The notes under the pieces were generated by a model. That model ran no database searches and was not told the origin of the DNA. It saw only the letters and a list, made by a program, of their open reading frames with translations. DNA of 63,477 nucleotides, counting the filler, from Bigelowiella natans CCMP2755 (lineage: Eukaryota; Protista; Cercozoa), in the NCBI GenBank assembly GCA_000320545.1. It is 6 parts of 6 records of this genome, joined end to end, with 100 filler letters (N's around TTAATTAATTAA, not from the genome) between each part and the next. Parts side by side here need not be neighbours in the genome. Positions count along the whole stretch, not along the records: positions 58,814 to 63,477 come from ADNK01001440.1; 5 more parts are not named here. The stretch is one strand, 5' to 3'. Numbering within the stretch: the stretch's first letter is position 1; each line of letters opens with the position of its first letter. Made by a program: the position numbers and the translations under genes. Positions 58,814 to 63,477 of the stretch are shown here, in pieces.

Positions 58814-59098
58814 TCCGTCCATCATCGTCATCATCGTCGTCCTCATCATTATCATCATCATCCTACCTTCTGCATCATATCAGAGTCCTGCATCAGCTTG
58901 TCCATTCCAGCCATAGCGCCCTGTGAGGAGGAGGGGGGGGGGGGGAGGAGGAAAGGAGGGGGCGGCGGAGCCAGCAGCAGAGACGGGAATAATAAGTAAT
59001 TACCGCACATGAATTAAGATAGCGGAGTTTGGACGAAGTCCCACTGCGCGCAAACGCCGGCGATTTGGCTCCTTGTTGCTGTGCAACTAATATCTCAC

Positions 59099-60147
59099 CG
59101 GAGGCATTGCTCCCCCTGCTCCTCCTCCAATTGGCATAGTGCCGGGAGGAGCGCCACCCGCTGCGCCGCCGCCTTGCATGATATCCGTCAAATCTCCCAT
59201 CTTTGAAGAGAGCTTCTCGAGGAATGCTGGGGGGGAGGAAGGAGCACGACCAAGGGGGAGGGGGGGGGGAACATACGAATGTTGCGATATTAATCGACAT
59301 TTATGGACAGAGGGAGCATGTGAAAAGGGGATGATGAAGGAGAGAGAACGAAGTTTGATTGAACTGCATTGCGTGCACTAAGGCTGCCGCTATAACGATA
59401 CGAGGGGAGTAAATCTTTGCGCAGCAGTGATTGACGAAAACACCGCTCGATTTGGATGTCCGATTGGTTTGATATATGCAGGGAAACGCTAACAGTTATC
59501 CTGATGCGCCCACCACCTGGATCGTTGTAATACTTCATCATGGCGTCCATGCCACCAGACTCGAGTTCCGCGAAGATAGCCTGTAGTGATGTATGGGTCA
59601 TTTTTCAGTCTAGTGTACCGCTGTCATATAAGCTCCTTCCGATGTTGATGTATTATTTATATTGCTCAGAGTCGCTCCATATCATCATAACTCCATTCCC
59701 ACCCCCCTCCTTTCCTCCTTATTTTCAATGCTCTTCCGTCGTGGCACTGTTGTTGCTTCCTACCGACATCTCCGGGTCCTGCTTCATGGATTCTATACGT
59801 TTGACAAACTCCGGGTTTTGCATGATCTTCATCTGCTCTTGGACCATGCGCTGGATATCTGGATTGTTCATCGCCTAAGATGCGTAAACAGGAGTCGAAC
59901 CATCGTGATACATAGCTCATACGCGCTACCCATGCGAGAATCTACCATACATGTCGTCTTTCGGCCTAACCTCTTTGTACTGAGCAGCCAAGTTCGGGTC
60001 GTTCATAAGCTTTTCCATGTCGATGGGGTTATTGTTATTCGATGAGTGGCGGCGCATAAGACGGTGGGTGTTGTGGAGCACGTGTCGTGGGGACGAGAAG
60101 TGTGATTGCCTCTGGCAACGAAGTGCGTTGATAGGACCAATCCTATT

Positions 60148-60202
<55 letters not shown>

Positions 60203-60465
60203 TTATATATTGAAACAATGAGCACCTTTTGCATTCTTACAAAGATGTCTGTGATATATACTGCACGTCTATCTATATGTATTTATCCCCAAAGGCAAAA
60301 CCTGTTGCTAGATCTGATGGTGGAGGCTAGAGGTGAGGCAGCACCGCGAATGGACACGAGGGTCATCACGGTGAGGCCGACCAGGGCCGCTAATACAACT
60401 GAAATAACAGCACAGTTCGTATCACATAACATGATCGGAATGTTACCAACCATGCACGAGGTCAT
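59099..60465 (-). CDS. STI1/HOP-DP-domain protein with a bipartite (signal + transit) presequence; probably 3'-truncated
   Basis: Exons read ...ISVVLAALVGLTVMTLVSIRGAASPLASTIRSSNR | IGPINALRCQRQSHF...MEKLMNDPNLAAQYKE | AMNNPDIQRMVQEQMKIMQNPEFVKRIESMKQDPEMS | AIFAELESGGMDAMMKYYNDP | AFLEKLSSKMG. The repeated DP/NP Met-rich helices are the STI1 pattern. Confidence 0.8.
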
Positions 60466-61061
60466 GGAGGTAACACATAACTAGTGTCAGACAATTTTCT
60501 CCTTACACTTCCGCTTGGTACCCCACCCCAATAACCCCTCCGCGACCACCATTGCAAACGGCTATTCTCTCTCCCTGTCTCCCACATTGTCCCATAAAAG
60601 GGGGGCTAGTTTTCAAAAAATTCCGCTCCCGGTCTTGCAACAAAACGATGCAGATCTTCCCCTTCCCATTCGCAAAGGCGTACCCAGGGGGGTGGAGGAG
60701 CGCATTTTCGGATTGTGTACTGTGGGCGAAAAGAGCGTTGCGGCCTGCGAATATGGTTGACGCACATTAGAAATCAAAAGTATTTCACTAGCCAAAAATC
60801 GCCAACGTTCCCTCGGAGATCCCTTCTCGGCTAGCCCTACTGAAGAGCGATCCTGAGAAATTCGCCTAAAAGAGCGGCTGTACCTGGATTTCAATATCTG
60901 AGGCAAGGAAGCAGGAATGTCTTCTTAGGTAATTTCAAAAGGGTTTCTGAGAAAAAGCGGTTGAAGTGTTCGCCTCCTTTGTTGTGCTTTGGATGCTATT
61001 CTTCATTGTCGCACTTTATAAACCGGAATCCATCAGATTTTTTGATTCCGGACGCATCTCG

Positions 61062-62167
61062 ATGGCTGCTTCCGCGTCCTCGGCCCGCAGGTTTTTCTCC
61101 GGCAGCACCGGATCGATCCAGAAAGCTCTCAGCCTTGCGGATACGTCGAACGCGCTCTCAAGGTTGGATGGGATAGCTCTTATTGATGAAATATTACGTG
61201 AAACTGGCTAATGTGCTTGCAGCAGGAATCGCTGTTTAGCCGTGCTTTCACATTGTGATGAGAGCCTCTCATTGTTTTGCTTTTTTCCAGGCTTGTGCTA
61301 CCAGGATCTCGACTGTACATACTAAGGCCCAAAGGGTACGTGCTTGAACATTTCCGAGACCTTTTGGCGGGGAAGAGCTATGTGGATATGTGCTTTCCAA
61401 AATGAGTAGCATCGGGCAGTTGTTTCCCTTCCGCTGGATTAGCGATGATTCTACGAGAGCCACAGCCAATTCCATTGTTAAATACTCCAAAGGTTCGGTA
61501 AAAGCAAGCTCGTCTCTGACCTAGCATCGCTACTTGAAGGGGGGGAGAAAGCCGAAAAACGATTCAACGGTAGCTGGCTACAGAAACACAAGCCCGTCCT
61601 CCTTCGCCAGCCGCAGCAGGTACGAATCGACATATGCTAGTTTTAAGCTTAAGTGATGTTCTAATTCATAATCTGACGCTGGGACCAATGGTGTGTCCAC
61701 TGCTGCAAGGTTGTTGTGACGTTTGACGTCGAAAGCGCTAGCTGTGGCACCAGCCCCCCGCTCCTCTCGCAACTAGAGCATCAGGCACTCCTCCACGGTC
61801 GATGCTTCGTAGCACATGAGATGGTTAGAATTAGGGTGTTGGACAATAAACTGCAAAGTGACGCGGCATGGTATACATAGGGACATTCCTGAAGTTCTAG
61901 CTACCTTGTTTGGCGGTGCAACCTTAATGATGTGTAGCTGTGCTCACGTTGTGACTAACGGTGCGTTAAATCAGGCGTCGATGTCGCCGAGGCGATCGGT
62001 GATTTCGACAACAGCGGAGCTTGTGGAAGTAGTAGCAGCGATGGAGACGACCGTGTGAAGCAGATGGAGAGGGCCTTTTGCTCGCTCTTCCGTGCGCTGG
62101 CCAAAAAGACCGGCAAGGTTCATCAAATTCATGCACGACATTGTGTGATCACACCTATGCACATGAT

Positions 62168-62205
<38 letters not shown>

Positions 62206-62649
62206 GCACGAGGTAGAACAAAAAGCGCAGAAGTGCTTGCAGTGATGACGATACACGGATGGACAGATGGATGCATTGTTGTGGTTGCAGGACTACTATT
62301 TGGGTGAGGAAATAGCCCTGAATATATCTGTCCTACGATACAAAATCATATTGCAGGTGTCTGTGTTGGTCGACGGAATCGATGCACCGTTCTTGCACTC
62401 TACCCTCCCATCATCATCTTCTTCTTCTTCTTCTTCTTCGGTTCTTCCTTCCAAAGATACTACCACTACTGCTACAACTGTGGCCGCCGCGACGGCACAG
62501 GACACGCATGGGCTGATGCGCGCAGCGATAGAGTAATAATAAGCTGCTGCGATAGAGTAATTAATTATCGCCTGTGGGCGAATAAGCTGGTGCTTTGCGT
62601 TGGCTCTGTGTGTTGCGTTCTGGTTGTAGTAGTCGTTGCCATAGCGTGT

Positions 62650-62689
<40 letters not shown>

Positions 62690-63094
62690 AGGTGTAGGTG
62701 TGGGGTGTATGTGGACAAGCAATAGTCATATAGTACATGCACTTTCATGCACATACCAATTCCACTTGCTGTCGTGCACACAGGCTCCACAGCGGAAACG
62801 ACAGCATCGGCTACCTTTTTGCCACTGGTACGTGTGAATTAATATATATTAATATATATATATATATATATATATACATAACATTCAACCGATGTCTAAT
62901 ATATCACCAAGCAGCGATGCAGTGTAGTGCCGTCTCTCAGCTTTCCCTCCTTCGCCCCCAACCCCCCCTCCATCACCGTGACTTGCGCTGCTACAACAGG
63001 GGAGTACCGCAGAGAGGAGTTGATGTCGTACCTGCAGGATATGCGTGATCTAACAATGGACATGCACCTATCGTCGGTAGTAGGCGTCACTGAG
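61062..63094 (+). CDS. AAA-ATPase_like (PF09820-type, bacterial family) protein; multi-exon, continues past the window end; an alternative in-frame ATG lies at 60993
   Basis: Exons 61062-61162, 61291-61335 and 61493-61619 splice to ...LADTSNALSRLVLPGSRLYILRPKGFGKSKLVSDLASLLEGGEKAEKRFNGSWL, which aligns by eye with the family YVDKT...YFLSRPRRFGKSLLISTL..YFEG...LFKGL. Later exons give VSVLVDGIDAPFL (from 62357; family VVILIDEYDKPL) and REELMSYLQDMRDLTMDMHLSSVVGVTE (63000-63094; family ...FVFLTGV). Confidence 0.75.
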
Positions 63095-63477
63095 GTCCCG
63101 TTTGGTGTTAGCACAGACGGGGAGGGGGCAACGAAAAAGGGGGGGAGGGGGGGGGGGGGGGAAAGGGGGGAAAGCAGAGAGACAATTCACACCACCTCCT
63201 CCTTTCCCCCCCCCCCTCCCAAAAACACGGAAGGCCAAATTTTTCCATAAAACTTACACCAATGGGTTGGTGGGGTGCACAGAGGGACATCCTCCTAAAC
63301 CCCACCTTTTCTGGGCCTTTCCCCCTGCCCAAGCGCGCTTTTTATTTACCGAGCTGAAAGGCCCTCCCCGTGAGGTGAAACGCCATGGGTGGGACCAAAA
63401 GGCTAACCGAACCCCTAAAAACCACCCTTCCACCCATGGACACCCCGAAAAAAAAGCGGGGGGGGGGGGGGGGGGGA

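Follow-up and report, generated by a model that had tools for sequence, protein, structure and literature searches.

Known members of the family

Proteins of the PF09820 ('AAA-ATPase_like') family are abundant across bacterial phyla and are also found in methanogens, as seen from the loci retrieved by the motif pattern described below. Bacterial and archaeal members of about 520 amino acids combine PF09820 with PF08011 (PDDEXK_9), as do the products of L064:968-2521 (Bacteroides sp. GM023) and L012:1505-3055. Here we describe a gene related to this family in the cercozoan Bigelowiella natans CCMP2755 (GenBank assembly GCA_000320545.1). The window, that is, the whole stretch of DNA analysed, is 63,477 nucleotides long and consists of six parts of this genome joined by filler; the gene lies on the plus strand of the part at positions 58814-63477 (ADNK01001440.1). 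Judged from its sequence and transcripts, it is an expressed, intron-containing nuclear gene for a very divergent eukaryotic relative of PF09820.

The gene shares with the bacterial proteins the motif order YVDKT, RPRRFGKS, PVi.ldf, vvvLiDEYD, rFvF.TG and LNnL.dIsl..GyTe, including the D, RP.FGK, D..D, TG and G columns, and its eukaryotic homologues add weak traces of the more C-terminal LLfQtGYLT...PNeEV sequence. Unlike the bacterial genes, it has seven spliceosomal introns, a basic leader where the bacterial domain has its first ~20 residues and a Gly in the Walker B motif, and the homologues lack the nuclease signature and carry long eukaryote-specific inserts.

There are some reports of this family in eukaryotes. 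'AAA-ATPase-like' (IPR018631) genes are mentioned in the genomes of psyllids, mealybugs and whiteflies, those of psyllids being regarded as bacterial transfers (PMC10087415, citing Sloan et al., 2014; PMC13732444). The mealybug copies are reported to be among predicted secreted proteins. One PF09820 cluster of the ESM Atlas is largely fungal. These insect and fungal genes likewise represent the bacterial family in eukaryotic genomes, although they belong to other host lineages and are set beside the B. natans gene by description only. The phenomenon is thus not new, and rather than a new kind of system the present gene represents a known family, of which it is a rare member, in a eukaryotic clade that has been little sampled. 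With it, the short list of eukaryotic members of this large and functionally uncharacterised bacterial family gains a protist copy rich in introns.

Relation to PF09820

The relation is traced through homologues retrieved with a single exon. Exon 3 alone (42 amino acids), scored against 1.84 billion representative proteins, retrieves P0001 (538 amino acids) and P0002 (604 amino acids) with 54-56% identity; a third match, to a Tudor-repeat protein, is due to chance. An Atlas feature search and a PDB sequence search with the same exon returned nothing. Both homologues score above the Pfam gathering threshold of PF09820 (26.1 bits), P0001 with 47.1 bits and P0002 with 36.7 bits. In tblastn they are colinear with exons 2, 3, 7 and 8, with 67% identity between exon 2 and residues 53-70 of P0002 and 62.5% between exon 7 and its residues 217-232.

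The bacterial side was sampled with a degenerate DNA pattern for FLSRPRRFGKSL, which yielded 120 bacterial and archaeal loci. Nearly all of them contain an open reading frame of about 520 amino acids with the motif near residue 40, and all ten of those tested were PF09820 plus PDDEXK_9 proteins. A profile built from 69 of these reading frames was run on 218 stop-to-stop six-frame pieces, among which the three highest scores fall on exons 3, 8 and 6, lying in the order of the profile. These scores are to be read with the caveat that the seeds of the profile were selected through the P-loop motif FLSRPRRFGKSL. The exon 3 piece reaches 12.6 bits at positions 47-77, with the further caveat that one matched Arg of this piece is intron read-through; the exon 8 piece reaches 6.2 bits at positions 202-226, and neither score is reached by any of 10,900 shuffled pieces. 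The exon 6 piece scores 1.2 bits at positions 133-158, around vvvLiDEYDkp, a score reached by 3 of the 10,900. The window gene is assigned to the PF09820 relationship because its homologues pass the Pfam threshold and its exons match the bacterial profile colinearly.

Other comparisons agree with this assignment. Profile-profile alignment by hhalign matches the eukaryotic pair to the bacterial set at a probability of 98.8% (E 1e-16), and residues 55-270 of P0005, a close relative of P0001, hit only PF09820 clusters in the Atlas feature search (20 of 20). When the exon peptides are added to the alignment as fragments, exons 2, 3, 4, 6, 7 and 8 fall in successive columns; MAFFT misplaced exon 1 along with the beginning of exon 5, and both were positioned by eye. 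The PF09820-like motif order claimed in a preliminary description of this DNA is present in full: LADTS (61134-61148, exon 1), RPKGFGKS (across the junction of exons 2 and 3), VLVDGID (exon 6), LFATG (across the junction of exons 7 and 8) and GVTE (63083-63094, exon 8), all on the plus strand. RPK-G-FGKS starts at residue 46 and conforms to the family form RPxxFGK[ST], which occurs about 40-45 residues from the N-terminus.

Eukaryotic homologues

P0002 is the product of a transcript in JGI sample 3300017015. It is assigned to Chlorarachnion reptans because its C-terminus overlaps, at 96% identity, with P0004 of this species (EukProt/MMETSP0109). Only the last ~110 residues of P0004 (779 amino acids) match P0002, the remainder being unrelated, and the P0004 transcript model is probably chimeric. 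P0001 and P0005 (593 amino acids), its mate in a 90% cluster, are from an uncultured marine eukaryote (coastal metagenome, EMO BON run ERR13954268, and the derived assembly GCA_977009605.1). The P0005 gene is intronless and adjoins a YL1 gene (L121 1350-3131, L123 1711-3327). At these loci it stands 170-330 bp from the divergent gene for YL1, a chromatin factor, so that a divergent pair is found again, with another partner than that of the B. natans gene.

By sequence comparison, the window gene, the C. reptans transcript and the uncultured marine eukaryote gene form one eukaryotic clade. P0002 and P0005/P0001 are 52-67% identical to the window protein in exons 2, 3 and 7, and share with it RPxGFGK[ST], LLRQP, D[SA][IV]G[FY]..ATG and RD.T.D, a basic leader and the absence of the Walker B Glu. 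They differ from it in having Asp where the window protein has the Walker B Gly, and in leaders that are 20-33 residues longer. Identity between P0005 and P0002 is 34%. Columns that do not vary in any of the 50 aligned sequences include the Asp of YVDKT, RP.FGK, both Asp of D..D, TG, the Gly of GyTe, a Trp, and Q.G of LLfQtGYLT; D47, K72, D180 and D183 of P0002 belong to these columns.

Word-index protein searches with whole P0002, with an alignment of P0005 and P0002, and with residues 44-275 of P0002 returned only the queries and, for whole P0002, the chimeric C. reptans transcript. Two scans of JGI metagenome contigs gave no further relative. Like those of the word-index searches, these results reflect the limits of the searches and not the size of the clade.

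Gene structure and expression

Transcript evidence comes from Logan contigs of three runs belonging to three studies (X1, X2 and X5, typed only as 'RNA?' on record) and from one raw RNA run, which yielded only 8 reads. On the plus strand, seven stretches are skipped by the contigs, each of which is bounded by GT..AG after the cut shifts given below, indicating that the transcripts are spliced and that the gene is on this strand. The joints are identical in the contigs of the three studies, and word depth over the gene is 6-68 across them. With the exons translated individually and the codon phase tracked throughout, an open frame extends from ATG 61062 to 63094 through eight exons (819 nucleotides, 273 codons), ending in phase 0 with a GT at 63095. 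The junctions proposed for this gene are thus borne out by transcripts with seven GT..AG introns and an open frame. Contamination with bacterial DNA is ruled out by the spliced transcripts.

Contigs start at 61032, 61038 and 61058, which defines a 5' untranslated part (61032-61061) with no ATG inside; ATG 61062 is the first within the observed transcripts. An in-frame ATG near 60990 was rejected as the start, as it has zero depth and lies ~40 nucleotides upstream of the furthest contig start. Use of that codon would add a hydrophobic N-terminus (MLFFIVALYKPESIRFFDSGRIS).

Exon 1 (61062-61162) encodes the N-terminus beginning with MAASASSARRFFSGS and LADTS at the position of the family's YVDKT, and ends in phase 2; its joint to exon 2 (61160>61289, cut +2) is found in the three runs and removes intron 1 (61163-61290). 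Exon 2 (61291-61335), bounded by transcript joints, encodes (R)LVLPGSRLYILRPK with the first half of the P-loop and ends with two bases of a Gly codon. Intron 2 (61336-61492, 157 nucleotides) interrupts this codon (GG|G), splitting RPK-G|FGKS; its joint (61334>61492, cut +1) is present in X1, X2 and X5. The P-loop is thus divided by an intron, as had been noticed from the DNA alone, and is invisible to a list of open reading frames; a gene missing from every such list can be rebuilt by reading the raw sequence.

Exon 3 (61493-61619) resumes with FGKS, the Lys-Ser of Walker A, followed by KLVSDLASLLEGG and, at a distance, LLRQPQQ, and is supported by joints as well as by the homologue and profile matches. 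After intron 3 (61620-61709; joint 61617>61708, GT..AG after the cut shift), exon 4 (61710-61797) encodes the strand VVVTFDVE at the family's yPVi.ldf position, placed there by the fragment alignment, and a variable region. It ends in phase 1 at 61797, a detail that goes beyond the earlier account. Intron 4 (61798-61974; joint 61796>61974, GT..AG after the cut shift) leads to exon 5 (61975-62117), in which a variable acidic and Ser-containing region precedes a helix (RVKQMERAFCSLFRALAKKTGK); the end of this exon aligns just ahead of the Walker B columns. Exon 6 (62357-62532), which follows intron 5 (62118-62356, GT..AG by transcript joint), opens with Walker B, VSVLVDGID (62357-62383), as placed by joints, profile and alignment columns, and continues with Ser/Thr-rich low-complexity sequence. 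Intron 6 (62533-62783) is likewise a GT..AG stretch with a transcript joint. Exon 7 (62784-62827), supported by joints and tblastn, encodes LHSGNDSIGYLFAT(G), the family's rFvF.TG strand, and is separated by intron 7 (62828-62999; joint 62826>62999, cut +1, GT..AG) from exon 8 (63000-63094), which encodes EYRREELMSYLQDMRDLTMDMHLSSVVGVTE at the position of LNnL.dIsl...icGyTe, as placed by the joint and the profile.

Contigs run ~200 nucleotides beyond 63094 with sequence that is absent from the piece, showing that the gene extends beyond it, and the C-terminal half of the gene lies past its end. The G/C-homopolymer-rich remainder (63095-63477) is an intron or a low-quality contig end, with loose transcript ends at 63139 and zero depth past ~63180. 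In addition, contigs of X1 and X2 leave exon 6 after 62479, at a codon boundary with a GT at 62480, and go on into TCTGCAGTCATAGAAGACGACAAGCAATGC, a sequence that the piece does not contain. This departure could be an alternative donor joined to an outside exon, a paralogue or allele, or a chimeric contig.

Walker B motif and nuclease region

The family form of Walker B is hhhhDEYD. The window protein has DGID in this place, retaining both Asp with Gly for Glu (codon GGA, 62375-62377, plus strand), whereas P0005 has DDYD and P0002 has DDID. At least 90% of the bacterial rows have the Glu, whereas each of the three eukaryotes has another residue there. The VDGID reading put forward in the preliminary description, with the conserved catalytic Glu missing, therefore stands: exon 6 is covered by contigs of all three runs with no variant listed, and the Gly is not an assembly slip.

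The accompanying idea of an ATPase-nuclease is not supported for the clade. PDDEXK_9 has no Pfam match in P0001 and P0002 even at E 0.1, and the ExK signature is replaced by P..S in P0005 and P..E in P0002, P0005 keeping only the upstream Glu and Asp (E533 and D542). Of the strongly conserved bacterial columns, the homologues keep 30 of 62 in the ATPase part and 3-4 of 15 in the C-terminal part. The middle module LLfQtGYLT...PNeEV is weak in them (domain score ~0 bits), with invariant Q and G and confident hhalign columns. The coding sequence contained in the window ends at the GVTE motif, ahead of the middle module and the nuclease region.

AlphaFold models of the homologues, built on the bacterial alignment, have a confident ATPase core (residues 45-270 of P0002 and 55-270 of P0005), a following beta-hairpin/helix module of moderate confidence and a poor C-terminus. 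Residues 514-568 of P0005 are modelled at low confidence as helices followed by beta-strands, a pattern not seen in P0002. The solved structures nearest to the P0002 model are BrxC (9zdx), Avs3 (8dgc), Cdc6/Orc1 (2qby) and two archaeal Walker-type ATPases, 2qen and 2fna, with effectively tied Z scores of 10-11. The superposition extends over 160-225 residues and takes in the nucleotide-binding core and, for 2qen, 2fna and BrxC, also the domains after it. Thus, according to the model, the core belongs to the ORC/STAND-like AAA+ fold class and to no specific family in it; the homologues have no sequence-level relation to these ORC/Cdc6- and STAND-type AAA+ ATPases, and Z is tied over many AAA+ clades. 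A PDB sequence search with a bacterial member and P0002 gave no solved relative, and Foldseek against the PDB gave only generic P-loop matches (E >0.005). PADLOC places the homologues and the bacterial members in no known defence system. Weak PF09820 matches have been listed in a review for RADAR, PARIS and Old-tin proteins (PMC10952713).

N-terminal leader

The N-terminus from ATG 61062 is free of acidic residues, as described before. The first one is residue 27 in the window protein, 41 in P0002 and 52 in P0005, and the preceding stretches are basic and rich in Ser, Ala and Arg. The leader of the window protein comprises 26 acid-free residues with a net charge of +3, and its RFF|S fits the pattern of the R-3 cleavage motif. 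In the AlphaFold models, the N-termini of P0005 and P0002 are disordered.

The claim of a mitochondrial-type leader is weakened. The basic, acid-free composition is real and common to the homologues, but no length is added over bacterial proteins: the P-loop starts at residue 46 in the window protein against a bacterial median of 45, so that the leader would replace the first ~20 residues of the domain and not be an added presequence. A bipartite leader of plastid type is ruled out by the absence of a hydrophobic signal peptide, and for the same reason the mitochondrion is the most plausible organelle. Import of the window protein into an organelle, mitochondrial if anything, may be given a chance no better than even.

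Proposed function and alternative readings

Walker B motifs of the form hhhhDD, which the two homologues have, are typical of STAND switches. We consider it probable, with some reserve, that the product of the window gene, as an expressed divergent relative of PF09820, binds ATP, hydrolyses it slowly or not at all, and serves as a switch or scaffold that depends on nucleotide rather than as a nuclease driven by ATP. With GKS and the Mg-binding Asp intact, ATP binding would be kept. Hydrolysis would be slow or absent because Gly occupies the position of the bacterial catalytic Glu and the relatives have Asp there, and the nuclease function would probably have been lost in the clade. The changes that are consistent over the clade, namely loss of the catalytic Glu and of the nuclease signature together with a basic leader, present a case, open to testing, in which a transferred enzyme would have become a switch that is slow or no longer catalytic. 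The biological pay-off is modest for now, as the family is uncharacterised and eukaryotic PF09820 genes have already been reported.

Several observations weigh against this interpretation. Searched one by one, the single exons (33-107 amino acids) have no Pfam match at E<=10, and NCBIfam gives nothing relevant on single exon pieces. Identity between the homologues and the bacterial proteins is only 13-22%, and in a quick tree with 69 bacterial sequences, a sample biased by the motif search, the two homologues share one very long branch that lies outside the whole bacterial set. The P-loop position noted above belongs here as well, since the absence of extra length suits a diverged N-terminus as well as a presequence. 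Loss of the Glu is no proof of lost hydrolysis, as its role could be taken over by another residue or by the second Asp of DGID; the bacterial family is itself of uncharacterised function; and the nuclease status of the window protein is extrapolated from homologues that are ~50% identical to it in conserved exons.

The most serious competitor, to which we give a little less than an even chance, is that the protein is cytosolic or nuclear and the 'leader' is a diverged N-terminal segment of the PF09820 domain with no cleavable targeting peptide. The unchanged P-loop position fits this well; Asp and Glu are also missing from the first 15 residues of 20 of the 69 bacterial members, the residues TGSIQKAL may be what is left of the bacterial PiGiQtF motif, and, as weak context, the P0005 gene adjoins the gene for the nuclear factor YL1. 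It accounts less readily for three eukaryotic N-termini that are all basic, Ser/Ala/Arg-rich and acid-free over 26-51 residues, for the 20-33 extra residues in P0005 and P0002, modelled as disordered, and for a short helix of P0005 (residues 3-10), located where the helical hydrophobic moment of this protein is highest. It is rather unlikely that the protein is instead a fully active ATPase that uses another catalytic acid and perhaps remains linked to a nuclease in the C-terminal half, past the end of the piece. Every sequence retains Walker A GKS and the two Asp of D-x-x-D, and P0005 keeps E533 and D542 with the helices and beta-strands modelled at 514-568 with low confidence; on the other hand, a Glu so conserved in bacteria has given way to other residues in all three eukaryotes, neither homologue has ExK, and PDDEXK_9 goes undetected in them.

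Two further explanations would deny the gene a function or its family. A transferred gene in decay, still transcribed but no longer functional, is very improbable: the low-complexity Ser/Thr runs of exon 6, the degenerate Walker B and the long branch would suit decay, whereas the frame is open over eight exons, seven introns are correctly spliced, expression is seen in three independent studies and the invariant columns of the family are kept. Furthermore, these derived features are kept by homologues in two other eukaryotes, a point in favour of purifying selection. We give hardly any credit to an unrelated P-loop protein whose motif order resembles that of PF09820 by chance; this would explain the failure of every single exon in Pfam, but the matches are colinear, exceed the shuffled controls and reach well beyond the P-loop. 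The favoured interpretation of a PF09820-related switch or scaffold could also be carried further, to a small clade of marine protists and algae that domesticated a bacterial ATPase-nuclease, lost its nuclease and catalytic Glu, and imports the resulting nucleotide-sensing switch into mitochondria. In this full form the scenario is a long shot. If true, it would provide a STAND-like organellar sensor of bacterial origin, for example in surveillance or maintenance of the organelle genome.

Origin of the gene

An old bacterial transfer that gained introns had been proposed for this gene. An intron-containing, expressed and PF09820-related gene is indeed found. The tree named no donor, the eukaryotic pair being a long branch outside a motif-biased sample of 69 bacterial sequences. 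Transfer into eukaryotes is the economical reading because the family is rare there; bacterial origin would thus be the simplest explanation of the family distribution, with its direction read solely from that rarity. Likewise, 'old' refers only to the depth of divergence, the seven introns and the derived features common to three lineages.

Neighbouring gene and minor features of the locus

The two genes of the piece are divergent. The interval common to both (60466-61031) has no depth in any run at 60530-60997, which agrees with the divergent arrangement reported earlier: the silent stretch separates the 5' exon on the minus strand, covered to at least 60399, from the plus-strand contigs that start at 61032-61058. 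The neighbour (58814-60465, minus strand) has six or more exons (at about ..58920, 59099-59226, 59517-59580, 59764-59874, 59971-60142 and 60302-60465), as defined by CT..AC joints and exon translations. Its product has a 21-residue hydrophobic start (AVISVVLAALVGLTVMTLVSI), a basic Ser/Arg/His-rich stretch, DP-type STI1/HOP repeats and a Gly/Ala/Pro/Met-rich tail. The sole domain support is PF17830 at E 5.5e-5 on one exon, below the Pfam threshold. The N-terminus could combine a signal or anchor with a transit-like region after it, in a protein possibly of Tic40/Hop type.

The G+C content of the piece is ~49%, and it contains (AT)n, (CA)n and (TC)n microsatellites as well as runs of G or C. 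Long G or C homopolymers with degenerate-looking sequence occur at 63095-63477, 58925-58945 and 59250-59265, and look like low-quality contig ends or poly-G artefacts. Every read and contig that covers position 63146 has G in place of A. All dinucleotide microsatellites of the piece (60143-60301, 62169-62202, 62653-62683 and 62842-62880) are intronic in one of the two genes.

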